Counted from the first letter of the stretch, positions 14,411-57,442 are shown. The stretch is DNA of 64,000 nt from Anaeramoeba ignava BMAN (GCA_028826165.1 JAPDFW010000125.1:744001-808000), one strand, 5' to 3'. Numbers and translations are program-made. The notes: generated by a model not told the origin, from the letters alone.

Positions 14411-16188
14411 TTAATTTTGATTTTTGGTTTGTTTTTTAAATTCTTGAAGTGCAAAATCTAATAAATTGGGTTTTATTGGGTTTAATTGGAAATAATCAAC
14501 TGATTTTTCAATTTCGTAAATGATTTCTTTTGTAAGTTGAATTTCTTTTTTGATTTGATTTGAATAAATCCAATATTCAAATATTTGAAAAGCTTCATCA
14601 CTTATTTCACTATAATCTGTGACTTTATTAGATTTATCATCAGTTACTAATAAAAACATCCCTCGATATAACTCACTTCTCATTATTAATATCAATTTGT
14701 GGAATTTAATTGATTTTCCGTTTCTTTCAATAATAAAATCCTTTGTTGTCTCATCTTCAAACAATCTTCTCATACTTTCGCTTAATTTTTCTTCTTTGAT
14801 AATTTCTTTAATTTCAGAATATAATTTTGTATTTATAATTCTGTTTGAATAAATCATTTCAAATATTTGATTTGATTCTTTAATTGATTTATTTGAAATA
14901 ATTTTTCGAAGTTTTTCAATTTGATTTTGATTTAATCTATTCTGAAGAATAAGTTGATGAGCTTCAATTACTTCTCCGTTTTTGGTTTTAAATGAAATAT
15001 CACAAAATTCTTTTCTTCTAAATAAATGGATCAAATCTTTCTCAAAATTGTTGAAATAAACTAAAAAAAGAAACGAATTGCTTGCTCCGCAATGAATATG
15101 GCACTTGAAAACATCCTCATCATATATAGAGAATCCAGGAATCTCAATTTGAAAGGGAATCAAATGATTCGAGGTTGAAGTATCAGCTAAGCGGCCAAAT
15201 TGAGTGTTTCCAAATCCAAACAATTTTCCATTTGAAGTTAAAATCAAATTATGTTCATAACCAACAGAAATTTCAAGAATATCATCGTGTTCAAAAAAGA
15301 ACGGAATTTCTGTAAATTCTTTAGTATTCTTGGTGTCTCCCAATCCGTTGTATTGCCAAAATCCACATGAATAAAGCTTTCGTTTTGAATATTTATTGGG
15401 AAATTCATCTTCAACTAGCATTACCGAATGAGAAGTTCCCATTTGAATATCAACTATTTTCCCTTTTGGAATATTTTGGATTTGTGTAAGTTTTTGATTG
15501 TCATTGATCTTGATGATTTTCCTAATCCAAGTTGACCAAAATAATTATATCCACAACAAAATAATTCTTGATTTGAATTTAAAAGAAAAACTGATAAAGA
15601 ACAATTTCCTGAAAATATTTTAGAAACATTTTTCATCATTAAAATTGGTTTTTCTGTTTTTTCAAGTGATATAGAATCAAAACCAAGTTGACAATATTCA
15701 TTTGAACCGATTCCATAAGAATTTTGATTTAAAGTTAATAAATAAATTGAATTAGCACCAGAAATAATATCTTGAATTACTCTATCATTTGTATCTTCAA
15801 TTAATGATGAAATATTGGTTAATCTATAAGGAAATCTTGAATTGATGAAATATCCTTTTGCAAATACATTTCCTTCAAAAGTGAGACTAGCTCCAATTCC
15901 TTCTCCATTAGATATCTTTTGAATATTTTTAATCTCAAGTGAATCTGTTAAATTTGAATTGTTTGTGTATTTTTTTGCTTTTCCATTTTCAAATAGTATA
16001 ATTGTTGTAAATCCTCTTGATGATATTTGTTTAATTTGATTTTCTTTTTCTTTTTCTTTTTCTTTTTCTTTTTTTGATTCATTTTCAAAATTGATTTCAA
16101 TTGGTTTTATTATTTTGTCTGCTGTAGCACAAACAAATGAAGGTAAATTATTAAAACCAAAAAAAAAAACTTTATTAATTTTCTTCAT
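14411..16188 (-). pseudogene. Divergent RCC1-BTB-BTB paralog split by a 1-nt frameshift (pseudogene or homopolymer sequencing error)
   Basis: ORFs 15454-16188 and 14411-15442 join if the T5 run at 15491-15495 is T6, which restores TIKKLTQIQNIPKGKIVDIQ. Confidence 0.75.
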
Positions 16189-16244
16189 TTTTCTTTTAAT
16201 TATTTTGAAAAGAAAGAAAAAAATGAAAAAATAATTTTTTAATT

Positions 16245-18014
16245 TTAATTTTGATTATTAAATTTGTTAATTAATAAATCAAATAAATTTGGATTTGTTT
16301 GATTTAATTGAAAATAATCAATTCCAATTTTAATTTCATCAATGATTTCTTGTGTAATTTTCATTCCATCTTTAATTTGATTTGAATAAATCCAATATTC
16401 AAATATTTGAAATGATTTATTACTTATTTCACTATAATCTTTAACTTTATTAGATTTATCTTCAGTTACAGATAAAAACATTCCTCGATATAATTCACTT
16501 CTCATTATTAATATTAATTTTGGAAATTTATATTGTTTTTCTTTTCTTTCAATAATAAAATCTTTTTCATTTTCATTTAAATAAATTCTTTTCATTGTTT
16601 CTTCTATTTTTTCATTTGAATTTATAATTTCTTTAATTTCAGAATATAATTTTGGATTTATTATTCTATTTGAATAAATCATTTCAAATATTTGATTTGA
16701 TTCTTTAATTGATTTATTTGAAATAATTTCTTGAAGTTTTTCAATTTGATTTTGATTTTGATTTAATCTATATTTCAATATTAATTTATGAGCTTCAATT
16801 ATTTCTCCATTTTCTGTTTTAAATGAAATATCACAAAATTCTTTTCTTCTAAATAGTTTTACCAAATCTTCTTCAAGATTGGAAAAAGGAGAAATAAAAG
16901 GAGAATAATAAAGAAATGAATTGTCATATCCACAAGAAATATGATAATTAGAAATATTTTCATTAAATCTTAATTTAGGAAGTTCACTTTGAAATGGAAT
17001 TGATTGTGTATTTGTATTTCCAGTTCCTAATTGACCATAAGAATTTGAACCAAATCCAATTAATTTATTATTGGAAGTTAAAATCAAAGTATGGAAACAA
17101 CCAACAGAAAATTCACGAATATTATCATAATTTTCAAATAAAGATGATTTGATTTCAGTAAATTCATAAGTATCTTCATCTTGACCAAGTCCATTAAAGA
17201 AATATCTTCCACATGAATAAAGTTTTCTTTTTGGATTTTGATTTTGATTTTCAATCAACATTACTGAATGAGAATATGCACATTGAATATCAATTATTTT
17301 ACCTTTTGGAATATTTTGGATTTTGGTTAATTTTTGGATTGTTTCTTCTTTTCTTGATTCTCCTAATCCAAGTTTACCATATTCATTCCATCCACATCCA
17401 AATAATTCTTGATTTGAATTTAAAAGAAAGGTTGATCGTGAATTATTTCCTGAAAATATTTTAGAAACATTTTTCATCATTAAAATTGGTTTTTCTGTTG
17501 TTTCAAGTGTTTCAGAATCAAAACCAAGTTGACCATAATAATTTGAACCAATTCCATAAGCATTTTGATTTGAAGTTAATAAGTAAATTGAACTATCTCC
17601 AGAAACAATATCTTGAATTATTCTATCATTTGTATCTTCAATTAATGATGAAATATTGATAAATTCATTTGGATTATCTGGATTAATATTATATCCTTTG
17701 GCAAATACATTTCCTTCTTTTGTTAAAATAGCTTCAACATCAACACCAACAGTTACTTTTTGAATATTTTCTTCAATTTGGATTTTTTTAGGATTTTGAT
17801 TTGAATCATTTTCATTTAAATATTCTATTGCTTTTCCATTTTTAAAAAGGAAAATTGTTGAAAAATCACCTGTTGAAATTTGTTTAATTTGTTTTTCATT
17901 TTCATTTTCATTTTCATTTTCAAATTTAAATTGAATTGGTTTTGTTATTGAATATGATTCATTTTTGAAAAGTTCTGGATATTGATTTTTACCAAAAAAT
18001 AAAATTTCATTCAT
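16245..18014 (-). CDS. RCC1-repeat / double BTB-POZ protein
   Basis: GxNxxGQLG RCC1 repeats; BTB1 FCDISF..AHKLIL; BTB2 KDFII..KLILIMRSELYRGMF..YWIYS. Confidence 0.92.
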   Translation of the reverse strand: MNEILFFGKNQYPELFKNESYSITKPIQFKFENENENENEKQIKQISTGDFSTIFLFKNGKAIEYLNENDSNQNPKKIQIEENIQKVTVGVDVEAILTKEGNVFAKGYNINPDNPNEFINISSLIEDTNDRIIQDIVSGDSSIYLLTSNQNAYGIGSNYYGQLGFDSETLETTEKPILMMKNVSKIFSGNNSRSTFLLNSNQELFGCGWNEYGKLGLGESRKEETIQKLTKIQNIPKGKIIDIQCAYSHSVMLIENQNQNPKRKLYSCGRYFFNGLGQDEDTYEFTEIKSSLFENYDNIREFSVGCFHTLILTSNNKLIGFGSNSYGQLGTGNTNTQSIPFQSELPKLRFNENISNYHISCGYDNSFLYYSPFISPFSNLEEDLVKLFRRKEFCDISFKTENGEIIEAHKLILKYRLNQNQNQIEKLQEIISNKSIKESNQIFEMIYSNRIINPKLYSEIKEIINSNEKIEETMKRIYLNENEKDFIIERKEKQYKFPKLILIMRSELYRGMFLSVTEDKSNKVKDYSEISNKSFQIFEYWIYSNQIKDGMKITQEIIDEIKIGIDYFQLNQTNPNLFDLLINKFNNQN

Positions 18015-18301
18015 TTTTAAAAAGAAAAAAATGAAAAAATAATTTTTGGAATTTTAATTTTAATTTTAATTTTAATTTTTAATTTTAATTTTAATTTTAA
18101 TTTTAATTTTGATTTTAATTTTGATTTTATTTTTGATTTTAATTTTAATTTTAATTTTAATTTTAATTTTAATTTTAATTTTAATTTTAATTTTAATTTT
18201 AATTTTAATTTTAATTTTAATTTTAATTTTAATTTTAATTTTAATTTTAATTTTAATTTTAATTTTGATTTTAATTTTTAATTTTAATTTTGATTTTAAT
18301 T

Positions 18302-20077: not shown

Positions 20078-20365
20078 TTTTAAAAAGAAAAAAATGAAAA
20101 ATGAAAAATGAAAAATAATTTTAATTTTAATTTTTAATTTTGATTTTAATTTTAATTTTAATTTTAATTTTAATTTTAATTTTAATTTTAAATTTAATTT
20201 TGATTTTGATTTTAATTTTAATTTTAATTTTGATTTTAATTTTGATTTTAATTTTAATTTAATTTTAATTTTAATTTTAATTTTAATTTTAATTTTAATT
20301 TTAATTTTAATTTTAATTTTAATTTTAATTTTAATTTTAATTTTAATTTTAATTTTAATTTTTTA

Positions 20366-22138: not shown

Positions 22139-22239
22139 TTTTGAAAAGAAAAAAAATGAAAAAAATGAAAAATGAAAAAATAAATTTTTAATTTTAATTT
22201 TAATTTTAATTTTAATTTTGATTTCATTAATGATTTCAT

Positions 22240-24060
22240 TTAAAAAATTGAACATTTTTCTTTTTTGTTTTTCAAATTTTGATTTTGATTTTGATTTTGA
22301 TTTTGATTTTTAAATTTATTAATTAATAAATCAAATAAATTTGGATTTTTTTGATTTAATTGGAAATAATCAATTCCAATTTTAATTTCATCAATGATTT
22401 CTTGTGTAATTTCAATTTCTTCTTTAATTTGATTTGAATAAATCCAATATTCAAATATTTGAAATGATTTATTACTTAATTCACTATAATCTGTAACTTT
22501 ATTAGAAGTATCATTTGTTACAGATAAAAACATTCCTCGATATAATTCACTTCTCATTATCAATATTAATTTTGGAAATTTATATTGTTTTTCTTTTCTT
22601 TCAATAATAAAATCTTTTTCATTTTCATTTTCATTTTCATTTAAATAAATTCTTTTCATTGTTTCTTCAATTTTTTCATTTAAATTTATAATTTCTTTAA
22701 TTTCAGAATATAATATTGGATTTATTATAGAATTGTTTGAATAAATCATTTCAAATATTTGATTTGATTCTTGAATTGATTTTTTTGAAATAATTTCTTG
22801 AAGTTTTTCAATTTGATTTTGATTTTGATTTAATCTATATTTCAATATTAATTTATGAGCTTCAATTATTTCTCCATTTTTGGTTTTAAATGAAATATCA
22901 CAAAATTCTTTTCTTTCAAATAATTTTATCAAATCTTCTTCAAGATTAGAAAAAGAAGGAGAAGAATAATAAATAAATGATCTTTGAAATCCACAAGAAA
23001 TATGATAATTAGAAATATTTTCATTAAATCTTAATTTAGGAAGTTCAATTTGAATTGGAATTGATTGTGTATTTGTATCTCCAGTTCCTAATTGACCAGA
23101 ATAATTATATCCAAATCCAATTAATTTCTTATTGGATGTTAAAATCAAATTATGAGCATTTCCAATAGAAAAATCAAGAATATTATCATCATTTTCAAAT
23201 AAAGATGATTTCATTTCAGTAAATTCATAAGTATTTTCATTTTTGCCAAGTCCATTATATAGATAATTTCCACATGAATAAAGTTTTCTTTTTGGATTTT
23301 CATTTTTATTTTCATTTTCAATCAACATTATTGAATGCATATTTCCACATTTAATATCAATTATTTTACCTTTTGGAATATTTTGGATTTGGGTTAATTT
23401 ATCGATTATCCTTTCTTTTCTTGATTCTCCTAATCCAAGTTGAGCATATTGATTATCTCCGCATCCAAACAATTCTTGGTTTGAATTTAAAACAAAAACA
23501 TGATTTGAAGAAATTCCTGAAAATATTTTAGAAACATTTTTCATCATTAAAATTGGTTTTTTTGTTTTTGGAAGTGTTTTAGAATCAAAACCAAGTTGAC
23601 CATCATAATTATCACCAATTCCATAAACATTTTGATTTGAAGTTAATAAGTAAATTGAATTAGCTCCAGAAACAACATCTTGAATTACTCTATCATTTGT
23701 ATCTTCAATTAATGATGAAATATTGATAAATTCATTTGGATTTTTTGGATTAATATCATTTCCTTTGGCAAATACATTTCCTTCTGTTGTTAAAATAGCT
23801 TCATTTGAAAAACCAACAGATACTTTTTGAATATTTTTGATTTGGATTTTTTCAGGATTTTGATTTGAATCATTTCTATTTAAATATTCTATTGCTTTTC
23901 CATTTTCAAAAAGGAAAAATGTTGAAAAAAAATCGGTTGAAATTTGTTTAATTTCATTTTCATTTTCAAATTTAAATTGAATTGGTTTTGTTATTTTTTC
24001 TGGTTTATTTTCGATAAGAATTGGATATTTATTTTCACCAAAAAATAAACAATCATTCAT
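22240..24060 (-). CDS. RCC1-repeat / double BTB-POZ protein with C-terminal polybasic-CaaX (KNKKEKCSIF)
   Basis: Start at MNDCLFF (24060); (NQ)n linker then CaaX. Confidence 0.92.
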   Translation of the reverse strand: MNDCLFFGENKYPILIENKPEKITKPIQFKFENENEIKQISTDFFSTFFLFENGKAIEYLNRNDSNQNPEKIQIKNIQKVSVGFSNEAILTTEGNVFAKGNDINPKNPNEFINISSLIEDTNDRVIQDVVSGANSIYLLTSNQNVYGIGDNYDGQLGFDSKTLPKTKKPILMMKNVSKIFSGISSNHVFVLNSNQELFGCGDNQYAQLGLGESRKERIIDKLTQIQNIPKGKIIDIKCGNMHSIMLIENENKNENPKRKLYSCGNYLYNGLGKNENTYEFTEMKSSLFENDDNILDFSIGNAHNLILTSNKKLIGFGYNYSGQLGTGDTNTQSIPIQIELPKLRFNENISNYHISCGFQRSFIYYSSPSFSNLEEDLIKLFERKEFCDISFKTKNGEIIEAHKLILKYRLNQNQNQIEKLQEIISKKSIQESNQIFEMIYSNNSIINPILYSEIKEIINLNEKIEETMKRIYLNENENENEKDFIIERKEKQYKFPKLILIMRSELYRGMFLSVTNDTSNKVTDYSELSNKSFQIFEYWIYSNQIKEEIEITQEIIDEIKIGIDYFQLNQKNPNLFDLLINKFKNQNQNQNQNQNLKNKKEKCSIF

Positions 24061-24162
24061 TTTTGAAAAAGAAAAAAATGAAAAAAATGAAAAATGAAAA
24101 AATAAATTTTTAATTTTTAATTTTAATTTTAATTTTAATTTTGATTTCATTAATGATTTCGT

Positions 24163-25995
24163 TTAAAAAATTGAACATTTTTCTTTTTTGTTTTTCAAAT
24201 TTTGATTTTGATTTTGATTTTGATTTTGATTTTTAAATTTATTAATTAATAAATCAAATAAATTTGGATTTGTTTGATTTAATTGAAAATAATCAATTCC
24301 AGTTTTAATTTCATTAATTATTTCTTGTGTAATTTGAATTTCATCTTTAATTTGATTTGAATAAATCCAATATTCAAATATTTGAAATGATTTATTACTT
24401 AATTCACTATAATCTGTAACTTTATTAGATTTATCATTTTTTACAGATAAAAACATTCCTCGATATAATTCACTTCTCATTATTAATATTAATTTTGGAA
24501 ATTTATATTGTTTTTCTTTTCTTTCGATTATAAAATCTTTTTCATTTTCATTTTCATTTTCATTTAAATAAATTCTTTTCATTGTTTCTTCAATTTTTTC
24601 ATTTGAATTTATAATTTCTTTAATTTCCAAATATAATTTTGGATTTATTATGGAATTGTTTGAATAAATCATTTCAAATATTTGATTTGATTCTTGAATT
24701 GATTTATTTGAAATAATTTCTTTAAGTTTTTCAATTTGATTTTGATTTTGATTTAATCTATATTTCAATATTAATTTATGAGCTTCAATTATTTCTCCAT
24801 TTTCTGTTTTAAATGAAATATCACAAAATTCTTTTCTTTCAAATAATTTTATCAAATCTTCTTCAAGATTGGAAAAAGAAAGAGAATAATAAATAAATGA
24901 ATTGAAATATCCACAATGGATATGATAATTGTAAATATTTTCATTAAATCTTAATTTAGGAAGTTCAATTTGAATAAGAATTTGCTTATTTCCTATATCT
25001 ACAGTTCCTAATTGGCCAAAAGAATTATTTCCAAATCCAATTAATTTTGATTTGGAAGTTAAAATCAAAGTATGAAAAGATCCAACAGAAAAATCAAGAA
25101 TATTATCATCATTTTCAAATAAAGATGATTTGATTTCAGTAAATTCATAAGTATCTTGATCTTTGTCAAGTCCATTATATCTCCAAAATCCACATGAATA
25201 AAGTTTTCTTTTTGGATTTTGATTTTGATTTTCATCTTCTTCAATCAACATTATTGAATGAGAATATCCAGATTGAATATCAATTATTTTACCTTTTGGA
25301 ATATTTTGGATTTTGGTTAATTTATCGATTATCCCTTCTTTTCTTGATTCTCCTAATCCAATTTGACTATATTCATTATATCCGCATCCAAATAATTCTT
25401 GATTTGAATTTAAAAGAAAAGTTGATTTTGAATAATTTCCTGAAAATATTTTAGAAACATTTTTCATCATTAAAATTGGTTTTTTTGTTTTATAAAATAA
25501 ATCAACACCAATTTGACCAAGTTCATTTGAACCAATTCCATAAACATTTTGATTTGAAGTTAATAAGTAAACTGAGCTCAAACCAGAAACAATATCTTGA
25601 ATTATTCTATCATTTGTATCTTCAATTAATGATGAAATATTGATAAATTTTTTTCGATTTTTTGGATTAATATCATATCCTTTTGCAAATACATTTCCTT
25701 CTGTTGTTAAAATAGCTTCATTTTGAGAACCAACAGTTACTTTTTGAATATTTTCAATTTGAATTTTTGAAGGTTTTTGATTTGGATCTTTTTTACTTAA
25801 ATATTCTATTGCTTTTCCATTTTTAAAAAGGAAAATTGTTGAAAAATCTCCTGTTGAAATTTGTTTAATTTGTTTTTCATTTTCATTTTCATTTTCATTT
25901 TCAAATTTAAATTGAATTGGTTTTTTTATTTCTTGTGGTTCATTTTTGAAAAGTTTTGGATTTTCATTTTTACCAAAAAATAAAATTTCATTCAT
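24163..25995 (-). CDS. RCC1-repeat / double BTB-POZ protein with C-terminal polybasic-CaaX (KNKKEKCSIF)
   Basis: 610 aa; same tail as the 22240 copy. Confidence 0.92.
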   Translation of the reverse strand: MNEILFFGKNENPKLFKNEPQEIKKPIQFKFENENENENEKQIKQISTGDFSTIFLFKNGKAIEYLSKKDPNQKPSKIQIENIQKVTVGSQNEAILTTEGNVFAKGYDINPKNRKKFINISSLIEDTNDRIIQDIVSGLSSVYLLTSNQNVYGIGSNELGQIGVDLFYKTKKPILMMKNVSKIFSGNYSKSTFLLNSNQELFGCGYNEYSQIGLGESRKEGIIDKLTKIQNIPKGKIIDIQSGYSHSIMLIEEDENQNQNPKRKLYSCGFWRYNGLDKDQDTYEFTEIKSSLFENDDNILDFSVGSFHTLILTSKSKLIGFGNNSFGQLGTVDIGNKQILIQIELPKLRFNENIYNYHIHCGYFNSFIYYSLSFSNLEEDLIKLFERKEFCDISFKTENGEIIEAHKLILKYRLNQNQNQIEKLKEIISNKSIQESNQIFEMIYSNNSIINPKLYLEIKEIINSNEKIEETMKRIYLNENENENEKDFIIERKEKQYKFPKLILIMRSELYRGMFLSVKNDKSNKVTDYSELSNKSFQIFEYWIYSNQIKDEIQITQEIINEIKTGIDYFQLNQTNPNLFDLLINKFKNQNQNQNQNQNLKNKKEKCSIF

Positions 25996-26134: not shown

Positions 26135-26250
26135 TTTTGATTTTGATTTTGATTTTTAAATTTGTTAATTAATAAATCAAATAAATTTGGATTTGTTTGA
26201 TTTAATTGAAAATAATCGATTTCAATCTGGAGTTAATCAATAATTTGTAA
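26135..26250 (-). pseudogene. Orphan 3'-end remnant of an RCC1-BTB gene
   Basis: Reads IID*LQIEIDYFQLNQTNPNLFDLLINKFKNQNQNQN* directly after the stop of the 26251 gene. Confidence 0.8.
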
Positions 26251-28119
26251 TTAAAAAATTAAACATTTTTCTTTTTTCTTTTTTGAATTTTGATTTTGAA
26301 TTTGAATTTGATTTTGATTTTGAATTTGAATTTGAATTTGAATTTGATTTTGGTTATTAAATTTGTTATTTAATAAATCAAATAAATTTGGATATGTTTG
26401 ATTTAATTGAAAATAATCAATTCCAATTTGAATTTCATTAATTATTTCTTGTGTAATTTGAATTTCTTCTTTGATTTGATTTGAATAAATCCAATATTCA
26501 AATATTTGAAATGATTTATTACTTAATTCACTATAATCTGTAACTTTATTAGAAGTATCATTTTTTACAGATAAAAACATTCCTCGATATAATTCACTTC
26601 TCATTATTAATATTAATTTTGGAAATTTATATTGTTTTTCTTTTCTTTCAATTATAAAATCTTTTTCATTTTCATTTTCATTTAAATAAATTCTTTTCAT
26701 TGTTTCTTCAATTTTTTCATTTAAATTTATAATTTCTTTAATTTCAGAATATAATTTTGGATTTATTATGGAATTGTTTGAATAAATCATTTCAAATATT
26801 TGATTTGATTCTTTAATTGATTTTTTTGAAATAATTTCTTTAAGTTTTTCATTTTGATTTTCGTTTTGATTTTGATTTAATCTATATTTCAATATTAATT
26901 TATGAGCTTCAATTATTTCTCCATTTTCTGTTTTAAATGAAATATCACAAAATTCTTTTCTTTCAAATAATTTTATCAAATCTTCTTCAAGATTGGAAAA
27001 AGAAGGAGAAGAATAATAAAGAAATGAATTGAAATATCCACAAGAAATATGATAATTGAAAATATCTTCATTAAATCTTAATTTAGGAAGTTCAATTTGA
27101 ATTGGAATTGATTTATTTCCTATATCTACAGTTCCTAATTCACCATAAAAATTATTTCCAAATCCAATTAATTTCTTATTGGATGTTAAAATCAAAGTAT
27201 GAGCATATCCAACAGAAAAATCACGAATATTATCGTTTTCAAATAAAGATGATTTGATTTCAGTAAATTCATAAGTATTTTCATCTTTCACAAGTCCATT
27301 ATATTGGGAAGCTCCACATGAATAAAGTTTTCTTTTTGGATTTTGATTTTGATTTTCATCTTCTTCAATCAACATTATTGAATGAAACCATCCACATTTA
27401 ATATCAATTATTTTACCTTTTGGAATATTTTGGATTTTGGTTAATTTATCGATTATCCTTTCTTTTCTTAATTCTCCTAATCCAAGTTGAACGTATTCGT
27501 TATTACCACATCCAAATAATTCTTGATTTGAATTTAAAAGGAAAACACAAGTTGAAGAATTTCCTGAAAATATTTTAGAAACATTTTTCATCATTAAAAT
27601 TGGTTTTTGTGTTTTTGAAAGTGTTTCAGAATCAAAACCAAGTTGACCATAATTATTTGAACCAATTCCATAAACATTATGATTTGAAGTTAATAAATAA
27701 ATTGAATTGTATCCAGAAGCAATATCTTGAATTATTCTATCATTTGTATCTTCAATTAATGATGAAATATTGATAAATTCTTTTGGATTTTTTGGATTAA
27801 TATCTTTTCCTTTGGCAAATACATTTCCTTCTATTGTTAAAATAGCTTCATTTGAAAAACCAACAGTTGCTTTTTGAATATTTTTAATTTGGATTTTTTG
27901 AAGATGTGGATTTGAATATTTTAAATATTCTATTGCTTTTCCATTTTTAAAAAGGAAAATTGTTGAAAAATAACCTGATGAAATTTGTTTAATTTGTTTT
28001 TCATTTTCATTTTCATTTTCATTTTCAAATTTAAATTGAATTGGTTTTGTTATTTTATCTGGTTCATTTTTGAAAAGTTTTGGATATTGATTTTCACCAA
28101 AAAATAAAATTTCATTCAT
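26251..28119 (-). CDS. RCC1-repeat / double BTB-POZ protein with C-terminal polybasic-CaaX (KKKKEKCLIF)
   Basis: Start at MNEILFF (28119). Confidence 0.92.
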   Translation of the reverse strand: MNEILFFGENQYPKLFKNEPDKITKPIQFKFENENENENEKQIKQISSGYFSTIFLFKNGKAIEYLKYSNPHLQKIQIKNIQKATVGFSNEAILTIEGNVFAKGKDINPKNPKEFINISSLIEDTNDRIIQDIASGYNSIYLLTSNHNVYGIGSNNYGQLGFDSETLSKTQKPILMMKNVSKIFSGNSSTCVFLLNSNQELFGCGNNEYVQLGLGELRKERIIDKLTKIQNIPKGKIIDIKCGWFHSIMLIEEDENQNQNPKRKLYSCGASQYNGLVKDENTYEFTEIKSSLFENDNIRDFSVGYAHTLILTSNKKLIGFGNNFYGELGTVDIGNKSIPIQIELPKLRFNEDIFNYHISCGYFNSFLYYSSPSFSNLEEDLIKLFERKEFCDISFKTENGEIIEAHKLILKYRLNQNQNENQNEKLKEIISKKSIKESNQIFEMIYSNNSIINPKLYSEIKEIINLNEKIEETMKRIYLNENENEKDFIIERKEKQYKFPKLILIMRSELYRGMFLSVKNDTSNKVTDYSELSNKSFQIFEYWIYSNQIKEEIQITQEIINEIQIGIDYFQLNQTYPNLFDLLNNKFNNQNQIQIQIQIQNQNQIQIQNQNSKKKKEKCLIF

Positions 28120-29477: not shown

Positions 29478-32400
29478 TTAATCCAAAAATTTTTTGATCT
29501 CAGAAAGTGATAAAAGTTGAGGAGATCTTCCCCAATAATTAAAATCATTGAAAACTTCAATATCATTTTTTCTTGCAGGGAAAACAAAGTTTACAATTTG
29601 GTCGAGATCTTTATATGAAGATTTGAAGCGGGAATGATTGATAGAAATTGTTCCTTTTTTGTCGATCAAAAAAATTCTTTCTTCTGGAATTTTGACAGCA
29701 AGATATGAAATTCTATCAGTATCTTTGTTTCCAAAACCAGCATAGAATGAGTCTTGAGAAAATAGTTTAGCGATATTTTCAAGGCAAGGTATTTTAAATT
29801 CATGTGGTTTTCGATGTATTACTTCTCTTCTAAATGAAAAAAAGAGAGTATCTGGTGACATTATAACTGGACCTGCTGGTAATTTTTTTTCACTTTGTTG
29901 AACTGTTGATATATATGAGCGTGTTAAATGAGCTTGTCCGATAGATCTTGATGAAAGATATATTAGCTTTTAATTATTAATTTTTATATTAATTTTTAAA
30001 TCAATTATTAAATATTAAATCAATATTAAATCAATATTAAATCAATATTAAATCAATATTAAATCAATATTAAATATAAAATATTAAATCAATATTAAAT
30101 TTTTAAATTATTAAATTATTAAATTATTAAATTATTAAATTATTAAAAATATTAAATATTAAAATTATTAAATCAATATTAAATCAATATTAAATCATTA
30201 TTAAATCAATATTAAATATAAAATATTAAATATTAAATTATTAAATATTAAATTATTAAATCAATATTATATAAAATATTAAAATATTAAATTTTATATC
30301 AATATTTAAATCAATTATAAATTATTAAATATTAAATCAATATTAATAAATGAATATAAAAATATTAAATCAATTATAAAATATTAAATCAAATATAAAA
30401 TATTAAATCAATTATTAAATTATTAAATTTTTATATCAATATTAAATATTAAATTAATATTAAATCAATATTAAATTATTATTAAATTATTAAATTATTA
30501 TTAAATTAATTTTTAAATCAATATTAATTATTAAATATTAATTATTAAATTATTATATATTTATCTACTTTGTAATCATTCTTCCCAATATTAGTATATA
30601 ATGATGCAATTCCTTGATGTGCCCAATCATAATTTGAAACTAATGGCACAATTAAACCTAAAACATCCGATTTTGTAATTGTTCCATCAATATCACTAAT
30701 TACAATTTTATCATCATAATCCCAATAAAATATCTTCCCATTTACTTCATGCTTTTCTCCAATTACAAACCTAATATTATTTTCTCCCTTTTTCAATCCT
30801 AATTTTAATAATTCTTCTGATTTTGGATACAAACTTTTAATATAATTTATGTTTTTTGCATTTTCCAATTTTTCTTTTTGCTGAATTTGAATTTCTATAT
30901 TATTTTCATTATTTTTGATATTTTCATTATTTTTGATATTATTTTCATTATTTTTATTATTTTCATTGTTTTTCATATTTTCATTGTTTTTGATTTTTTC
31001 ATTGTTTTTGATTTTTTCATCATCCTTTTTTTTCGGTTTTGGATGAAACCAACGATCCCATCTTGATTGTTGATTTGTTAATTCATATTTCTCTAATGAT
31101 TGAGAAATATTTTTCCCAAAAACTAATACTGAAATAATATACTCAATTGCTTGTTCTGATGGATAAAATGCTCCATTAATTTTGAAAACTGCTTTTTTAT
31201 CAAAAATTATTTTTGGATTCTGTTCAAATTTTGATTGTGAAACCAAATGAAGTTGAAAAATTGATTGTATTTGTTCATATTTCATATTTGGCTTAATAAT
31301 ATTTTTACACAACGAAATTTGAATATTTTGTAAATTTGAATCTTCTATTGAGTATGAATGTGAAATTGAATGAATATTTTCAAGTGAGACATCAGAATTT
31401 GAATCTAAATTTGAATCCAAATCCAAATCCAAATCCGAATTCAAATCCAAATCTAAATCTAAATCTGAATATGATTTTGTGCTATTATTATTATTGTTAT
31501 TATTATTATTATCTTCCTTTTCTTCTGAAATCCTTTCTACATTAATAATTGGATTGATTTTGTTCTTATTTGAAACTTCTAAATATTTAATTTTAAACGA
31601 ATTTTCCCGATTTTCTACAATTTTTTCATTTTCTTTGGAAATTATAAAACTTGGTGTTTGAACCATTTTTGTTTTTTCTTTCTTTTTACTTCTAAATAAC
31701 CCAAAAACAGCACCAAATGAAGATTCAATTCCTTTTTTGACGGTTGTTGGTTTTGGATTTTTTTCTTCATTCGAATTTTTTGGATTGATTTCGTTTTTTT
31801 GATTTTGATTTTGAATTTGATTTTGATTTTGATTTTGATTTTGAATTTGATTTTGAATTTGATTTTGAATTTGATTTTGAATTTGATTTTGAATTTGAAT
31901 TTGATTTTGAATTTGATTTTGATTTTGATTTTGATTTTGATTTTGATTTTGATTTTGATTTTCATTTTGATTTTCATTTTGATTTTCATTTTGATTTTCA
32001 TTTTGATTTTCATTTTGATTTTCATTTTGAATTTGATTTTGATTTTGATTTTGAATTTGATTTTGATTTTCATTTTGATTTTCAGTTTCAGTTTCATTTT
32101 GATTTTGATTTTCATTTTGATTTTCAGTTTCAGTTTCAGTTTCGAAATCATTCTCAAGTTCGTTTTCAGTTTCAATTTCATTTTCAATTATTTTTGAAAC
32201 ATCATCATTAAGAATTTCACTTGAATCTTGAGAATTAAAATTTTGGGAAATGGAATCATCTTCATTATCAAGAGGAAGATCACCCCAATTCCAAATCCAT
32301 TGAGTTTGATTTTTTATATTTTCTTTTTGGAATGAATTAATTGATGGATCATCAGTAAAATCTGTGCTTGTTTCTCTTGAAAAGGAAGTTTCTGATTTTT

Positions 32401-32961
32401 CTGAAGAAAGCTCCATAAAATCCAAATCTTCCAATAAATTTCCTTCTAAAAAATTATTTTCATCAAATTCTATTTCTTGATTTTCAAAATTTTCGTTTGA
32501 ATTTGAAAAACCGTTTTTGGTTCGCTCTTCGTTTTGATCAGGAGTATTTTCAAGAAAAGGGATTGGTGAAGTTAGTAAAGTTTTTGGGATTTCGTTCTGG
32601 AAAAAAATAATTGAGTGATTTTTTGGATTAGTGATTTTTTAGTTGATTTTTTTTTGAGATGATGAGTTGATACTTGGTAAGATTCGTGCACAAAAAAAGC
32701 GACACCTTTAGCGCCAACTTTCATTTTCAAGTCACTAAGTTTATTATTCACATAAATTGAGACAATGTTGTTGCGAGGTTTCAGGATTTTTAATTGTCCA
32801 AAGCGAATGTGGAAAGGGGTTGATTTTATTGTGTTATTTTTTTGTTTAACTGCGATAATATCAATTGCACCAGATAAAGTGCTTGTATTTACTTCTGATA
32901 AGCCCAGTTTTGAAGAAATTGCGGAAAAATATTTGTTAGCTTTTTGGCCGATAAAAGACAT
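29478..32961 (-). CDS. PAH1: Lipin / phosphatidate phosphatase; exons 32961-32674, 32596-30569, 29966-29478
   Basis: N-LIP domain (TLSGAIDII..STPFHIRFG), catalytic DIDGT motif (SDIDGTITKSD), YLSSRSIGQA, FYAGFGNKDTD; introns keep frame. Confidence 0.93.
29970..30560. repeat. Intronic AT minisatellite (AAATCAATATT / AAATTATT)
   Basis: Fills lipin intron 2. Confidence 0.8.
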
Positions 32962-37312: not shown

Positions 37313-37720
37313 AATTCAAATTAAAATTAAAATAAAAATTAAAATTAAAATTTAAAATCAAAATTAAAATTAAAATTAAAATCAAAAATAAAAATCAAAA
37401 TTAAAATTTAAATTAAAATCAAAATTCAAATTTAAAATTAAAATTAAAAATAAAATTAAAATCAAAATTAAATATTAAAATTAAAATTAAAATTAAAATT
37501 AAAATTAAAATTAAAATTAAAATTAAAATTAAAATTAAAATCAAAATTAAAATTAAAATTAAAATTAAAATTAAAATTAAAATTAAAAATTAAAATTAAA
37601 ATTAAAATTAAATCAAAATTAAAAATTAAAATTAAAATTAAAATTAAAATCAAAATTAAAATTAAAATTAAAATCAAAATTAAAATTAAAATTAAAATTA
37701 TAATTAAAATTAAAAATCCA
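37313..37720. repeat. (AAAATT)n intergenic spacer, representative of most RCC1-BTB spacers
   Basis: The same hexamer tract, on the sense strand, separates almost all tandem copies; ~25-440 nt long. Confidence 0.85.
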
Positions 37721-37753
37721 AAAATTTTTTTTTCATTTTTTTTCTTTTCAAAA

Positions 37754-39535
37754 ATGAATGATTGTTTATTTTTTGGTTTAAATCAAGATCCAATTCTTAT
37801 CAAAAATGAACCACAAAAAATAACAAAACCAATTCAATTTAAATTTGAAAATGAAAATGAAAATGAAAATGAAAATGAAAAACAAATTAAACAAATTTCA
37901 TCAGGTTATTTCGGAACAATTTTCCTTTTCGAAAATGGAAAAGCAATAGAATATTTAAATAAAAAAGATTCAAATCAAAATCCTTCAAAAATCCAAATTG
38001 AAGAAAATATTCAAAAAGTAACTGTTGGTTATCAAAATGAATCTATTTTAACAAAAGAAGGAAATGTATTTGCCAAAGGATATGATATTAATCCAAAAAA
38101 ACCAAAAGAATTTATCAATATTTCATCATTAATTGAAGATACAAATGATAGAATAATTCAAGATATTGTTTCTGGATCTAATTCAATTTACTTATTAACT
38201 TCAAATCAAAATGCTTACGGAATTGGTTTGAATCAATCTGGTGAACTTGGTTTTGATTCTAAAACACTTAAAAAAGTACAAAAACCAATTTTAATGATGA
38301 AAAATGTTTCTAAAATATTTTCAGGAGCTGATTCAAGTTTTGTTTTTCTTTTGAATTCAAATCAAGAATTATTTGGATGTGGATTGAATACTCATGATCA
38401 AATTGGATTAGGAGAATCAAGAAAAAAAGAAGAAAGTATCCAAAAATTAACCAAAATCCAAAATATTCCAAAAGGCAAAATAATTGATATTCAATGTGGA
38501 TTTTATCATTCAATAATGTTGATTGAAAATGAAAATCAAAATCCAAAAAGAAAACTTTATTCATGCGGGAGTAATGCATATAATGGACTTGGCAAAGAAG
38601 ATCAAACTGCAAAAGAATTTACTGAAATCAAATCATCTTTATTTGAAAATGATAATATTCTTGAAATTTCTGTTGGATTTACTCATAATTTGATTTTAAC
38701 TTCCAAATCAAAATTAATTGGATTTGGAAATAACAATTATGGTGAATTAGGAACTGGAGATACAAAAACACAATCAATTCCAATTCAAATTGAACTTCCT
38801 AAATTAAGATTCAATGAAAATATTTCCAATTATCATATTTCTTGTGGATCTTTCAATTCATTTATTTATTATTCTCCTCTTTCTTTTTCCAATCTTGAAG
38901 AAGATTTGATAAAATTATTTGGAAGAAAAGAATTTTGTGATATTTCATTTAAAATCAAAAATGGAGAAATAATTGAAGCTCATAAATTAATATTGAAATA
39001 TAGATTAAATGAAAATGAAAATGAAATTGAAAAACTTCAAGAAATTATTTCAAATAAATCAATTAAAGAATCAAATCAAATATTTGAAATGATTTATTCA
39101 AATAATTCCAAAATAAATCCAAAATTATATTCTGAAATTAAAGAAATTATAAATTCAAATGAAAAAATTGAAGAAACAATGAAAAGAATTTATTTAAATG
39201 AAAATGAAAATGAAAAAGATTTTATTATTGAAAGAAAAGAAAAGAAATATAAATTTCCTAAATTAATATTAATAATGAGAAGTGAATTATATCGAGGAAT
39301 GTTTTTATCTGTAACTGAAGATAAATCTAATAAAGTTACAGATTATAGTGAATTAAGTAATAAATCATTTCAAATATTTGAATATTGGATTTATTCAAAT
39401 CAAATTAAAGATGAAATTCAAATTACACAAGAAATAATTAATGAAATTCAAACAGGAATTGATTATTTTCAATTAAATCAAACAAATCCAAATTTATTTG
39501 ATTTATTAATTAACAAATTTAATAATCGAAATTAA
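37754..39535 (+). CDS. RCC1-repeat / double BTB-POZ protein
   Basis: 593 aa; family architecture. Confidence 0.92.
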   Translation: MNDCLFFGLNQDPILIKNEPQKITKPIQFKFENENENENENEKQIKQISSGYFGTIFLFENGKAIEYLNKKDSNQNPSKIQIEENIQKVTVGYQNESILTKEGNVFAKGYDINPKKPKEFINISSLIEDTNDRIIQDIVSGSNSIYLLTSNQNAYGIGLNQSGELGFDSKTLKKVQKPILMMKNVSKIFSGADSSFVFLLNSNQELFGCGLNTHDQIGLGESRKKEESIQKLTKIQNIPKGKIIDIQCGFYHSIMLIENENQNPKRKLYSCGSNAYNGLGKEDQTAKEFTEIKSSLFENDNILEISVGFTHNLILTSKSKLIGFGNNNYGELGTGDTKTQSIPIQIELPKLRFNENISNYHISCGSFNSFIYYSPLSFSNLEEDLIKLFGRKEFCDISFKIKNGEIIEAHKLILKYRLNENENEIEKLQEIISNKSIKESNQIFEMIYSNNSKINPKLYSEIKEIINSNEKIEETMKRIYLNENENEKDFIIERKEKKYKFPKLILIMRSELYRGMFLSVTEDKSNKVTDYSELSNKSFQIFEYWIYSNQIKDEIQITQEIINEIQTGIDYFQLNQTNPNLFDLLINKFNNRN

Positions 39536-41872: not shown

Positions 41873-43578
41873 ATGGGAAATACACAAGAAAAAAAACAAA
41901 TAAATAAAGGAAATCAAAATTCCAATTCAAATCCAAATGAAAAAGAGAAAGAGAAAGAAAAAGAAATTGAAGAAGAAATTGAAGAAGAAAAAAGAGCAGA
42001 ATTTGATGGTTTTTTCCAAAAGGAAAATGAAGAAGAATTTTCAATGTTTTATGACATACCTGATGATTTAGTTATTTATATTTGTAGATTTTTGGATCAA
42101 AACCAATTAATTTTACTAGCTCAATCATGCAAAAAATTTGAAGAATTAGCATTTGAACCGTATTTTTTTAATTATTAATATTTTTTATAAATATTTTTAA
42201 ATTGAATTTATTTATAAATTTATTTTTTTTAGATGTTTATGGAATGATCGATCAATTTCACTTTATCAAACTGTAAATCGGTTTACAATTGTTAGATTAA
42301 CTCGAACAGTTGAACATTTACAAGGAATTCGGTAAAAAATTTTTCAATTAAATTTTTCAATTAAATTTTTCAATTAAATTTTTCAATTAAATTTTTCAAT
42401 TAAATTTTTCAATTAAATTTTTCAATTAAATTTTAAATTGGATTTTTTAAAGAATGAAACACTGCAGAATCCAAAACCTTCCATCCTTCTTCGACGAAAT
42501 GAAAAAGAGATGTGGAGACTTAAAAACATTAGAACTTCACTCATGCTTTGTTGAAAACCCCTCCAAAGAAGAAACAAAACTAGGATCAATTGCACAACTT
42601 TCATCCTCATTAAAAAACTTACCTCAATTAACAGAATTATCACTTCCAAGTTCGAGATTAGGGACAATTCCCCCAGAAATATACAAGCTAAAACAACTAC
42701 AAAAACTGAATTTAGTTGCGAATCAATTCAACAGCAATCCATTTACATCCAAAATTTCAAATCTTGATTCGCTAAAGGAATTACGACTTGATATGAATGA
42801 TATTTCAATAATTGAACCCAATATTTTCAAGCTCAAACACATGGAAGTATTATCGTTTTCTTTTAATTCAATTTCTGCACTTCCATCTGAAATAGGGAAT
42901 TTAACGGAATTGAGGAATCTTCGCTTGTCAAATAATTCAATATCATTTTTGCCAAACACAATGAAATCACTTTTGAGTTTAAAAACAATTGAAATTGGAT
43001 CAAACAGACTTGGTTCCTTCCCAGACGTGCTTCTGGAATGCCAAGACTTGGAAAGGATTGAGCTATTTAATAATCAAATAAGAACAATTCCAAACGAAAT
43101 CAACAAGCTTTCCAATCTCAAAGTTTTGAAGTTGAATTCCAATCAAATTCAAGAAATCCCCTCAAATTTATTCAAATTAGAACATCTTGAATTTTTGGAT
43201 TTGCGATTGAATCAAATTAGTTCAATTCCGATTGAAATTTCAAATGCAAAATCACTACATCATTTGATTATTTTTGGGAATAAATTAACAAGTCTTCCTC
43301 ATACTATTTGCTTTCTTCATCTCCAGCAACTTTCTGTTCAAGGAAATCAAATACTTTCTCTTCCTTCTGAATTTGGTGATACTCAATTTGCTTTAACAAA
43401 CAGTTTGACTCATCTTGATTTAAGTTCAAATTCTCTAACAGAAATTTCCGAATCTATTATCAATATGAAAAATCTTCTTTATCTTGATTTGACAAAAAAT
43501 TCTGGGAATTCTTCTTTGGCTTATACTCTACGTTCTTATTTTAAGGATTGGCCAAATCTTACTTATAAACTGGATTAA
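41873..43578 (+). CDS. F-box / leucine-rich-repeat protein with a putative N-myristoylation site; exons 41873-42159, 42233-42331, 42453-43578
   Basis: MGNTQEK start; F-box DIPDDLVIYICRFLD..LILLAQSCKKFEELA; about 13 LxxLxLxxN repeats; two GT-AG introns keep frame. Confidence 0.87.
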
Positions 43579-47600: not shown

Positions 47601-47986
47601 TTTTGAAATGAAAAAAAATGAAAAAATGAAAAAAATGAAAAATGAAATTTTTAATTTTAATTTGATTTTGATTTTAATTTTAATTTTAATTTTAAATTTT
47701 GATTTTAATTTTGATTTTAATTTTAATTTTAATTTTAATTTTAATTTTAATTTTAATTTTTAATTTTAATTTTAATTTTGATTTTAATTTTAATTTAAAT
47801 TTAATTTTAATTTTAATTTTAAATTTTAATTTTAATTTTGATTTTAATTTTAATTTTTAATTTTAATTTTAAATTTTAATTTTAATTTTAATTTGAATTT
47901 TAATTTGAATTTTAATTTTGATTTTAATTTTGATTTTGATTTTAATTATTAAATTTTAATTTTAATTTTAATTTTAAATTTTAATT

Positions 47987-49750: not shown

Positions 49751-49824
49751 TTTTGAAATGAAAAAAAATGAAAAATGAAAAATGAAAAATAAAAAAAAAT
49801 TTAATTTTAATTTTAATTTTAATT

Positions 49825-51627: not shown

Positions 51628-51914
51628 TTTTGAAATGAAAAAAATGAAAAATGAAAAAATGAAAAATGAAATTTTTAATTTTAATTTTGATTTTAATTTA
51701 AATTTAATTTTGATTTTAATTTAAATTTAATTTTGATTTTAATTTTAATTTTAATTTTAATTTTAATTTTAATTTTATTTTTGATTTTAATTTTTGATTT
51801 TAATTTTAATTTTAAATTTTGATTTTAATTTTAATTTTAATTTTGATTTTGATTTTAATTTTAATTTTGATTTTAATTTTAATTTTAATTTTAATTTTAA
51901 TTTTAATTTTGATT

Positions 51915-53687: not shown

Positions 53688-53817
53688 TTTTGAAAAGAAA
53701 AAAATGAAAAATGAAAAATGAAAAAAAAATTTGATTTTAATTTTTAATTTTAATTTTAATTTTAATTTTAATTTTAATTTTTGATTTTAATTTTAATTTT
53801 AAATTTTAATTTTGATT

Positions 53818-55551: not shown

Positions 55552-55627
55552 TTTTAAAAATGAAAAAAAATGAAAAAATGAAAAAAAAATTTTTTTTTTA
55601 ATTTTAATTTTAATTTTGATTTTAATT

Positions 55628-57442
55628 TTAATTTTGATTTTGATTATTAAATTTGTTAATTAATAAATCAAATAAATTTGGATTTGTTTGATTTAATTGA
55701 AAATAATCAATTCCTGTTTGAATTTCATCAATTATTTCTTGTGTAATTTGAATTCCTCCTTTAATTTGATTTGAATAAATCCAATATTCAAATATTTGAA
55801 ATGATTTATTACTTAATTCACTATAATCTGTAACTTTATTTGATTTATCTTTTGTTACAGATAAAAACATTCCTCGATATAATTCACTTCTCATTATTAA
55901 TATTAATTTAGGAAATTTATATTTCTTTTCTTTTCTTTCAATAATAAAATCTTTTTCATTTTCATTTAAATAAATTCTTTTCATTGTTTCTTCAATTTTT
56001 TCATTTGAATTTATAATTTCTTTAATTTCAGGATATAATTTTGGATTTATTATTCTGTTTGAATAAATCATTTCAAATATTTGATTTGATTCTTTAATTG
56101 ATTTATTTGAAATGATTTCTTGAAGTTTTTCAATTTGATTTTGATTTTCATTTTCATCTTTTAATCTATATTTCAATATTAATTTATGAGCTTTGATTAT
56201 TTCTCCATTTTTGGTTTTAAATGAAATATCACAAAATTCTTTTCTTTCAAATAATTTTATCAAATCTTCTTCAAGATTGGAAAAAGAAGGAAGAGAATAA
56301 TAAAGAAATGATTTATTAAATCCACAATAAACATGATAATTGGAAATATTTTCATTAAATCTTAATTTAGGAAGTTTAATTTGAATAGGAATTCTTTGAT
56401 CTTTTGTATCTCCAGTTCCTAATTGGCCATAATTGTTATTTCCAAATCCAATTAATTTTGAATTAGAAGTTAAAATCAAATTATGAAAACATCCAACAGA
56501 AAAATCAAGAATATTATCATCATTTTCAAATAAAGATGATTTGATTTCAGTAAATTCATAGTCATTTTTAAGTATTTTGCCAAGTCCATTATATAGATAA
56601 TCTCCACATGAATAAAGTTTTCTTTTTGGATTTTGATTTTCATTTTCATTTTCAATCAACATTATTGAAAAAGTAAATCCACATTGAATATCAATTATTT
56701 TACCTTTTGGAATATTTTGGATTTTGGTTAATTTTTGGATTTTTCTTTCTTCTTTCTTTGATTTTCCTAATCCAAGTTGACCTTGTTCATTATCACCACA
56801 TCCAAATAATTCTTGATTTGAATTTAAAAGAAAAACATGATTTGAAGAATTTCCTGAAAATATTTTAGAAACATTTTTCATCATTAAAATTGGTTTTTCT
56901 GTTTTTGGAAGTGTTTTAGAATCAAAACCAAGTTGAACATCTTGATTTGAACCAATTCCATAAGCATTTTGATTTGAAGTTAATAAGTAAATTGAACTAT
57001 ATCCAGAAACAATATCTTGAATTATTCTATCATTTGTATCTTTAATTAATGATGAAATATTGATAAATTCATTTGGATTTTTTGGATCAATATTTTCTCC
57101 TTTAGCAAATACATTTCCTTCTATTGTTAAAATAGCTTCATTTTTATAACCAACAGTTACTTTTTGAATATTTTCTTCAATTTGGATTTTTTCAGGATTT
57201 TGTTTTAAATATTCTTCATTTAAATATTCTATTGCTTTTCCATTTTTAAAAAGGAAAATTATTGAAAATCTGCTTGATGAAATTTGTTTAATTTGTTTTT
57301 CATTTTCATTTTCATTTTCATTTTCATTTTCATTTTCATTTTCATTTTCAAATTTAATTTGAATTGGTTTTGTTATTTTTTGTGGTTTATTTTTGATAAG
57401 AATTGGATTTGAATTTAAACCAAAAAATAAAATTTCATTCAT
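55628..57442 (-). CDS. RCC1-repeat / double BTB-POZ protein
   Basis: 604 aa; family architecture. Confidence 0.92.
   Translation of the reverse strand: MNEILFFGLNSNPILIKNKPQKITKPIQIKFENENENENENENENENEKQIKQISSSRFSIIFLFKNGKAIEYLNEEYLKQNPEKIQIEENIQKVTVGYKNEAILTIEGNVFAKGENIDPKNPNEFINISSLIKDTNDRIIQDIVSGYSSIYLLTSNQNAYGIGSNQDVQLGFDSKTLPKTEKPILMMKNVSKIFSGNSSNHVFLLNSNQELFGCGDNEQGQLGLGKSKKEERKIQKLTKIQNIPKGKIIDIQCGFTFSIMLIENENENQNPKRKLYSCGDYLYNGLGKILKNDYEFTEIKSSLFENDDNILDFSVGCFHNLILTSNSKLIGFGNNNYGQLGTGDTKDQRIPIQIKLPKLRFNENISNYHVYCGFNKSFLYYSLPSFSNLEEDLIKLFERKEFCDISFKTKNGEIIKAHKLILKYRLKDENENQNQIEKLQEIISNKSIKESNQIFEMIYSNRIINPKLYPEIKEIINSNEKIEETMKRIYLNENEKDFIIERKEKKYKFPKLILIMRSELYRGMFLSVTKDKSNKVTDYSELSNKSFQIFEYWIYSNQIKGGIQITQEIIDEIQTGIDYFQLNQTNPNLFDLLINKFNNQNQN

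Follow-up and report, generated by a model that had tools for sequence, protein, structure and literature searches.

A hypervariable face on a constant scaffold: a very large RCC1-propeller/double-BTB family of Anaeramoeba ignava as candidate cullin-3 receptors

Introduction

The window analysed here, a stretch of 64,000 nucleotides from contig C115 (bases 744001-808000) of the 42.8 Mb Anaeramoeba ignava assembly in 147 contigs, has a G+C content of 20%, encodes proteins whose matches are almost all annotated A. ignava proteins, and carries, at 14411-57442, an array of genes for proteins that consist of an RCC1-like propeller followed by two BTB domains. The copies share a nearly invariant framework and differ from one another chiefly at a few short sites, and the question raised by the locus is what such a family is for. 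In a preliminary description the array was presented as an antibody-like repertoire of ubiquitin-ligase adaptors directed at non-self proteins. The reading best supported by the analysis below, to which we give a probability of about 60%, is a repertoire of cullin-3 receptors whose binding face is hypervariable. It builds on features that we regard as established, namely the anatomy, fold and copy number of the family, the position of the variation and recombination between copies.

Architecture and fold of the family proteins

With one family copy as the tblastn query, 16 intact, full-length and intronless copies of 577-622 codons were located at 16245-57442. Together with one divergent split copy and a 31-residue remnant they make up the array at 14411-57442, and the 17 copies originally counted there were thus recovered. 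One intact copy served as the reference for residue numbering, fold and complex prediction, and its parts are as follows.

35537-37312, plus strand: intact family gene, 591 residues, the reference copy
35537-36652, plus strand: propeller of the reference copy, residues 1-372, seven blades
36659-36946, plus strand: BTB domain 1 of the reference copy, about residues 375-470
36974-37261, plus strand: BTB domain 2 of the reference copy, about residues 480-575

In every copy tested against Pfam, an RCC1-like domain (PF25390, PF00415, PF13540) scored above or near the cut-offs and two BTB stretches (PF00651) were found per protein, in agreement with the architecture first assigned to the family. The AlphaFold2 model of the reference copy (mean predicted local distance difference test score, pLDDT, 88.2; predicted template-modelling score, pTM, 0.69; 27 strands) has seven four-stranded blades, the seventh of which is completed by the N-terminal strands 4-9 and 22-28. 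When the model was compared with solved structures using Foldseek, HERC2, RCC1, RPGR and UVR8 were matched with E-values of 1e-27 to 1e-21; target-normalised template-modelling scores were 0.77-0.81 to HERC2 RLD2, RCC1 and RPGR and 0.68-0.77 to UVR8. Four members on other contigs, of 838-1,096 residues and annotated as 'aardvark', have an N-terminal armadillo-repeat region fused to the propeller-BTB-BTB unit.

Position and nature of the variation

Across the 16 intact window copies, five or more different residues occur at 33 alignment columns, 32 of which lie in the propeller. Hardly any change is seen in the strands or the BTB half; the variable residues occupy the x positions of the GxNxxG and GxxH motifs of each blade; the loop motifs and variants quoted at the outset (SNYY, SNNY, DNYD, LNRS and others) are present in this alignment. 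Hypervariable sites were defined on an independent set of 108 paralogues from other contigs. In these, 26 propeller positions carry 10-17 residue types at 2.5-3.5 bits, against a median entropy of 0.23 bits at the other propeller sites and 0 in the BTB half. On average two copies differ at 84% of the 26 sites, compared with 16% of the remaining propeller sites and 7% of the BTB half, and 108 of 109 copies have a combination of residues at the hypervariable sites that no other copy shares. The same two loops are affected in each of the seven blades and the pattern is replicated on independent copies; the variation is therefore not a product of chance.

In the numbering of the reference copy, the hypervariable residues are 9, 11, 12, 50, 91, 92, 108, 140, 141, 159, 171, 193, 209, 211, 225, 248, 249, 271, 273, 307, 308, 324, 326, 337, 364 and 365. 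Taken blade by blade, the variable positions of the A-B (GxxH) loop are 50; 91/92; 140/141; 191-193; 248/249; 307/308; and 364/365, and those just after strand C (the C-D loop, GxNxxG) are 9/11/12; 108; 159/160; 209/211/212; 271/273; and 324/326. Since the strands of a four-stranded blade run antiparallel, its A-B and C-D loops emerge on the same side of the propeller. When the sequence is aligned to UVR8, residues 248/249 and 307/308 fall on W and R of the GWRHT motifs, whereas 209/211/212 and 324/326 fall on GWG-type motif positions (the x of GWG/GxxGQLG). In UVR8 these motif residues make up the dimer and partner interface, and the equivalent face of RCC1 binds Ran. By strand topology and the UVR8 alignment, rather than by measured distances, the hypervariable positions are thus placed on one face of the modelled propeller, as the original picture of a constant scaffold with a hypervariable face had it.

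Tyr, Asn, Asp, Glu and Ser are abundant at the hypervariable sites and Ile and Leu are scarce, a composition far from the AT-driven mutational equilibrium: relative to that equilibrium Ile stands at 0.12x, Leu at 0.23x and Val at 0.3x, while Asp and Glu stand at 4.8x, Trp at 6x, Arg at 2.5x and Tyr at 1.5x. Because the residues lie so far from the mutational equilibrium of the genome, pure neutrality is unlikely, and the notion that these sites are merely unconstrained was ruled out on composition. The sites also vary almost independently. Measured as normalised excess mutual information, the association of sites in different loops amounts to 0.01 and that of sites in one loop to 0.07-0.12; each loop shows 44-59 different dipeptides among the 109 copies. 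This near-independence and the many dipeptides per loop make ancient cassettes an unlikely source of the variation; a small number of them shuffled by conversion was ruled out by the same dipeptide counts and by the near-zero association even of adjacent residues.

Selection on the propeller and the BTB half

In Nei-Gojobori windows silent divergence stayed close to 0.1 along the whole gene, and ratios of nonsynonymous to silent change (dN/dS, or omega) were 1.1-2.4 over the propeller and 0.12-0.5 over the BTB half. As absolute values these ratios were discarded, since AT bias inflates them and composition-aware codon models give 0.34 overall; under GY+F3X4 in IQ-TREE, the propeller had an omega of 0.46-0.48 and the BTB half one of 0.14. 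MG94 models, in which the site classes were taken from the out-of-window paralogues, separated the sites as follows.

26 hypervariable sites: MG94 omega 5.3-5.8
Other propeller sites: MG94 omega 0.5
BTB half: MG94 omega 0.25

Tested against omega = 1, the hypervariable sites gave a likelihood-ratio statistic of 233-281. A comparison of models M1a and M2a gave a likelihood-ratio test (LRT) value of 252.8, with 8.6% of sites at omega 4.5. Twenty-six sites had a posterior above 0.95 under M2a, 25 of them in the propeller and 20 in the independently defined hypervariable set. The only non-propeller site above this posterior is residue 450 of the reference copy (about 36884-36886; S/P/L/C/Y), which lies between the BTB domains.

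Conversion alone was ruled out as the source of constancy in the BTB half, where omega is 0.14-0.27 although silent divergence is at least as high as in the propeller scaffold. Without constraint, about 9.7 nonsense hits would be expected per lineage and the probability of no stop would be 6e-5, whereas 16 of the 17 window copies are intact; the reading frames are clearly maintained. Both the BTB half and the open reading frames (ORFs) are thus under purifying selection.

Predicted docking on cullin-3

The A. ignava genome has at least eight cullin loci, among them one cullin-3 orthologue, on contig C58, which matches solved cullin-3 at 4e-127 as against 2e-107 for cullin-4. Compared with solved structures, the others comprise four cullin-4-like loci, one cullin-1/2-like locus and a tandem cullin-1-like pair. 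The cullin-4-like paralogues lie on contigs C64, C71, C109 and C74 and the tandem cullin-1-like genes on C57. As the cullin-3 gene is multi-exon, its annotated 736-residue protein was used, and a complex was predicted between the tail of the reference copy (residues 372-591) and residues 1-385 of cullin-3.

This complex reached an interaction prediction score from aligned errors (ipSAE) of 0.73, compared with 0.38 for the best control; this mark is attained by 51 of 78 solved complexes and by 2 of 108 mismatched pairs. From run to run at least 79% of contacts agree, and the pLDDT of the partner does not fall below 87. The predicted contacts join residues 509-529 and 565-571 of BTB2 to residues 42-59 and 110-121 of cullin-3, and the second BTB is the only one predicted to touch cullin-3. 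BTB2 is accordingly predicted to dock on the single cullin-3, which lends in silico support to the cullin-3 adaptor role proposed at the start.

Size, distribution and integrity of the family

A 30-base marker in BTB2 (up to 3 mismatches) has 1,264 matches in the genome and a 30-base propeller marker 1,152, with 0 matches for the reversed-pattern control of either. The family therefore numbers about 1,150-1,260 copies, takes up about 5% of the genome and is arranged in arrays on most contigs. A genome-wide count had been called for in the preliminary description, whose 'repertoire of 17' holds for the window but understates the family, and roughly half of the copies sampled elsewhere are broken. 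Twenty loci from contigs C1, C2, C7, C10, C11, C13 and C15 yielded 29 intact copies and 27 split or truncated ones, with 8 more running off the locus. Arrays may differ in age or assembly quality, for 16 of 17 copies are intact in the window and about half on other contigs.

All 30 relatives looked up that have both domains, down to 33% identity, are from A. ignava, and the next matches beyond this species are long bacterial RCC1-repeat proteins that share the propeller only. The cullin-3 proteins of the two Anaeramoeba species are 50-52% identical. Since the species are this distant and silent divergence within the family is near 0.1, the expansion is either recent or continually homogenised.

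A literature search found no paper on expanded RCC1-BTB families. The terms BTB, RCC1 and ubiquitin do not occur in the main text of the genome paper (PMC11550330), whose Supplementary Data 5C has matching PANTHER labels among lateral-transfer candidates, mainly of A. flamelloides.

Organisation of the array and its neighbours

Besides the reference copy, the array comprises the following elements.

14411-16188, minus strand: divergent family member, 61% identical to the reference copy and broken up into two ORFs that differ in frame (N-terminal part 15454-16188, C-terminal part 14411-15442)
16245-18014, minus strand: intact RCC1-propeller/BTB/BTB gene, 589 residues
18302-20077, minus strand: intact family gene, 591 residues
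20366-22138, minus strand: intact family gene, 590 residues, start set at the conserved Met
22240-24060, minus strand: intact family gene, 606 residues, Lys-rich C-terminal extension with the CaaX-type box CSIF at its end
24163-25995, minus strand: intact family gene, 610 residues, CaaX-type end CSIF
26155-26247, minus strand: 31-residue remnant, the C-terminal end of a family gene
26251-28119, minus strand: intact family gene, 622 residues, CaaX-type end CLIF
37313-37753, plus strand: typical inter-copy spacer, with an (AAAAT)n-type microsatellite and, after it, a conserved T-rich leader containing TCATTTT repeats
37754-39535, plus strand: intact family gene, 593 residues
39857-41626, plus strand: intact family gene, 589 residues
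43756-45606, minus strand: intact family gene, 616 residues
45840-47600, minus strand: intact family gene, 586 residues
47987-49750, minus strand: intact family gene, 587 residues
49825-51627, minus strand: intact family gene, 600 residues
51915-53687, minus strand: intact family gene, 590 residues
53818-55551, minus strand: intact family gene, 577 residues
55628-57442, minus strand: intact family gene, 604 residues

The divergent split copy is either frameshifted or intron-containing. Three window copies have a Lys-rich C-terminal extension with a CaaX-type prenylation box (ends at 22240-22300, 24163-24220 and 26251-26310), and genome-wide such a box ends 11 of 121 family proteins; judged by these ends, a subset of the family may be membrane-anchored. 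The spacers, of which 18015-18301 is another example, are alike across copies, and the duplicated unit is therefore the gene plus its spacer. The TCATTTT leader stops about 10 nucleotides upstream of the ATG, and its unit resembles the TCA-type initiator element of parabasalids.

The array is interrupted by unrelated genes: one for a leucine-rich-repeat protein, one for a lipin homologue, and a small ORF that matches nothing in Pfam. These interruptions and the other neighbouring genes are located as follows.

11054-11551, plus strand: Ras-family ORF, match beginning at profile position 41
30545-32434, minus strand: large exon of the lipin homologue (Lipin_mid, LNS2) with a long acidic Glu/Asn-rich repeat region, interrupting the array
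42454-43578, plus strand: gene for a 374-residue leucine-rich-repeat protein, between the plus-strand and minus-strand blocks of family genes
57493-59094, minus strand: glycosyltransferase spread over two ORFs
60253-61662, minus strand: TLDc-domain gene beside the array, BTB-BACK-TLDc in organisation and so a different type of BTB protein from the array family
62485-63840, minus strand: second TLDc-domain gene, adjoining the first

The Ras-family ORF and the glycosyltransferase are probably parts of intron-containing genes, unlike the intronless family genes.

Discussion

On the reading that we prefer, the family is a very large one, seen only in A. ignava, whose members would be cytosolic proteins made of a rigid seven-bladed RCC1-like propeller and a double-BTB tail. 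The second BTB would dock on the N-terminal domain of the single cullin-3, which would make each protein a receptor that brings substrates to a cullin-3 RING ligase. The face formed by the A-B and C-D loops, with about 26-40 positions that differ in nearly every copy, would be the binding surface, and the family would then be a germline-encoded library of binders feeding one effector. The evolution of the family is for the most part shown by the data. It expands by tandem duplication of the gene with its microsatellite spacer. Recombination or gene conversion between copies holds the scaffold near-identical, silent sites included; copies are born and die, many of them broken, and the amino acid at each hypervariable codon is replaced very rapidly, with little dependence on the other sites.

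Several observations weigh against this reading. Recombination is pronounced (pairwise homoplasy index, PHI, 0.600 against 0.679 +/- 0.008 when permuted, p <= 0.0005), the nearest-neighbour copy shifts along the gene, and tree-based tests of selection are inflated as a consequence. If the silent rate at hypervariable codons is left free, it becomes 4-6 fold higher (LRT 19.9) and omega drops to 1.1-1.2; a tree-free pairwise fit gave a silent multiplier of 5.7 and an omega of 1.7, compared with an omega of 12 under the gene-wide silent rate. A site-wise dN/dS above 1, as had been anticipated for the loops, is thus seen relative to gene-wide silent change (4.5-5.8) but comes to only 1.1-1.7 relative to local silent change, because silent diversity is raised 3-7 fold at adjacent codons. 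This local rise is genuine and confined to a very short distance. Where the amino acid of a column does not vary, silent diversity reaches 0.126 if a hypervariable site lies no more than two codons away, as opposed to 0.034-0.038 at the remaining columns of that kind (p = 0.007 by permutation stratified by amino acid). A set of 24 independent copies shows 0.26 at the codon directly adjoining and 0.02-0.06 at others, or 0.38 and 0.06-0.13 when four-fold codons alone are counted. The pattern could arise if selected amino-acid changes bring multinucleotide mutations with them, if conversion with short-patch repair leaves mismatched loop codons untouched, or through a mutational hot spot a few nucleotides wide, the last of which belongs among the adverse points. 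Diversifying selection likely drives the variable sites, although it is not cleanly separated from local mutational input.

The integrity, tail and expression of the family add to these points. Broken copies make up about half of the sample from other contigs, and an internal TAA occurs in 12 of the 74 best genome matches; some broken copies could be assembly errors. The family proteins have no Pfam match to BACK or the 3-box; in the AlphaFold2 model of the reference copy helices at 534-590 follow the BTB2 core, and residues 565-571 belong to the predicted cullin-3 interface. The score of the predicted complex shows likeness rather than binding, because BTB-cullin-3 complexes have already been solved. 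Finally, among the roughly 200 family protein clusters seen (the 120 best full-length ones and 89 fragments matching the constant tail, all of the latter from genome annotation) none has a EukProt transcriptome as its source, whereas cullin-3 and two divergent members (36-40% identity) do list one. This is a weak negative, because near-identical paralogues assemble poorly from short reads.

A special case of the cullin-3 receptor reading, and the one put forward in the preliminary description, is non-self recognition, in which viruses, prey bacteria, the sulfate-reducing symbionts or transposons would supply the proteins bound by the variable face, and these would be marked for destruction by the cullin-3 ligase. 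The constant/variable layout, the Tyr/Asn/Asp/Ser-rich variable residues, the unique combination in nearly every copy, the birth-and-death turnover and the restriction to A. ignava all agree with it, as do the intracellular symbionts carried by the host (PMC11550330) and the RCC1-like domains of the interferon-induced HERC5 and HERC6, which evolve under positive selection in a host-pathogen context (PMC4021598, PMC6002735, PMC7775381). We nevertheless regard it as speculative and less likely than not. The missing transcriptome support among the family clusters weighs against it too; lacking a signal peptide, the proteins could reach only cytosol-exposed targets; and the observations would fit self targets as well as non-self ones. 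In its boldest form, which we think unlikely, the family would be a germline immune-type repertoire of more than 600 intact cullin-3 receptors acting against viruses, prey or symbionts, with targeted mutation or short-patch repair altering a few nucleotides at each loop codon and gene conversion keeping the remainder of the gene uniform.

The family could also be a phenomenon of the genome rather than of recognition. Unequal crossing-over, favoured by the microsatellite spacers, would amplify the unit, conversion would homogenise the scaffold, the loops would be unconstrained at mutational hot spots, and many or most copies would contribute little to fitness. The broken half of the sampled copies, the pervasive recombination, the raised silent diversity beside the variable codons with its omega of 1.1-1.7, and the lack of transcriptome support among the family clusters can all be accommodated in this way. 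We consider it improbable, since intact frames are far too common for neutral decay, the BTB half keeps an omega of 0.14-0.27 at a silent divergence no lower than that of the propeller scaffold, and the composition of the variable sites is strongly non-neutral.

Self partners offer another explanation, in which the propellers would match expanded families of the host, such as its hundreds of small GTPases and trafficking regulators, as regulators resembling guanine nucleotide exchange factors or as adaptors. RCC1-type propellers are classical GTPase regulators (RCC1-Ran, 1i2m, is among the fold matches), and large expansions of Rab, TBC and HOPS/CORVET genes are described in the genome paper (PMC11550330). 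The Lys-rich CaaX-type end of 11 of 121 members, like that of small GTPases, would place these on membranes, and a Ras-family gene fragment lies in the window. Even so, some 1,200 copies with near-independent variation between sites far exceed any plausible set of co-evolving host partners, and one-to-one co-evolution predicts conserved orthologous pairs, not saturated variable sites; we find the explanation quite improbable.

Many BTB proteins work without cullin-3, and a purely self-assembling role, in which the BTBs would build multivalent scaffolds without any ubiquitin-ligase function and the propellers would bind ligands for sequestration or tethering, would sit well with the missing BACK/3-box match and with cullin-3 contacts predicted for the second BTB alone, but it is very improbable given that the predicted interface with cullin-3 42-59 and 110-121 passes a controlled test and that the closest named architectures, IBTK and RCBTB1, are reported cullin-3 substrate adaptors.

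If the cullin-3 receptor reading is true, about 5% of a protist genome would encode several hundred to more than 1,000 binders wired to one ubiquitin ligase. This would be among the largest recognition repertoires known in a single-celled eukaryote, in a role for which the RCC1 propeller fold was not previously known, and self/non-self discrimination inside free-living, symbiont-bearing protists would become directly testable. Diversification confined to the loop codons, if true, would be a eukaryotic, genome-level counterpart of diversity-generating systems. The family is in addition a natural system for studying scaffold uniformity alongside saturation of chosen positions, and the propeller scaffold is a ready-made natural design for propeller-based binders in protein engineering.

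Comparison with known systems

In architecture the family resembles IBTK and RCBTB1-2, in which an RCC1-like propeller is followed by BTB domains (two in IBTK), and many members are annotated in PANTHER as 'BTK-binding protein-related', a name that is the source's annotation only. IBTK has N-terminal ankyrin repeats in addition to its RCC1 repeats and two BTB domains, whereas the family proteins tested have no Pfam match to ankyrin repeats. IBTK and RCBTB are, moreover, single-copy conserved genes, while the A. ignava family is species-restricted, has about 1,200 copies and carries a hypervariable face.

A parallel in mode of evolution exists with the expanded MATH-BTB (and F-box) adaptors of nematodes and grasses, reportedly described by Thomas in 2006 in Genome Research and by Gingerich in 2007. 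These share lineage-specific tandem expansion, a conserved cullin-docking domain, a variable recognition surface and birth-and-death turnover, and positive selection in them is reportedly concentrated at the substrate-binding surface. In contrast to the MATH-BTB families, the recognition domain here is an RCC1-like propeller, the copies are more numerous by an order of magnitude, the scaffold has been homogenised to near identity at the DNA level, and the variable positions are saturated and nearly independent.

HERC5 and HERC6 likewise tie an RCC1-like propeller to a ubiquitin-type ligase function; they are HECT ligases with few paralogues and between-species selection, as opposed to a BTB adaptor with more than 1,000 paralogues in one genome. 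UVR8 and RCC1 (4d9s, 1i2m, 1a12) have the same fold as the family propeller, and the variable loops align with UVR8 motif positions. Both are conserved single genes with fixed partners, and neither photoreceptor nor exchange-factor activity is implied for the family.

Antibodies, lamprey variable lymphocyte receptors and plant nucleotide-binding leucine-rich-repeat receptors also combine a constant framework with a variable binding surface whose variable residues are rich in Tyr, Ser, Asn and Asp. The family proteins differ from them in being intracellular, with a putative ubiquitin-ligase effector and with their diversity held in separate germline genes, and there is no sign of somatic assembly or mutation. 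The term 'antibody-like' is therefore apt for the constant/variable layout but not for somatic diversification, all of the diversity seen being germline.

Systems of this kind are known, both as expanded cullin adaptors whose recognition surface varies and as RCC1-like domains under positive selection in HERC5 and HERC6; what is new in A. ignava is the recognition fold, the scale, the uniformity of the scaffold at the DNA level, and the saturation and independence of the variable sites.

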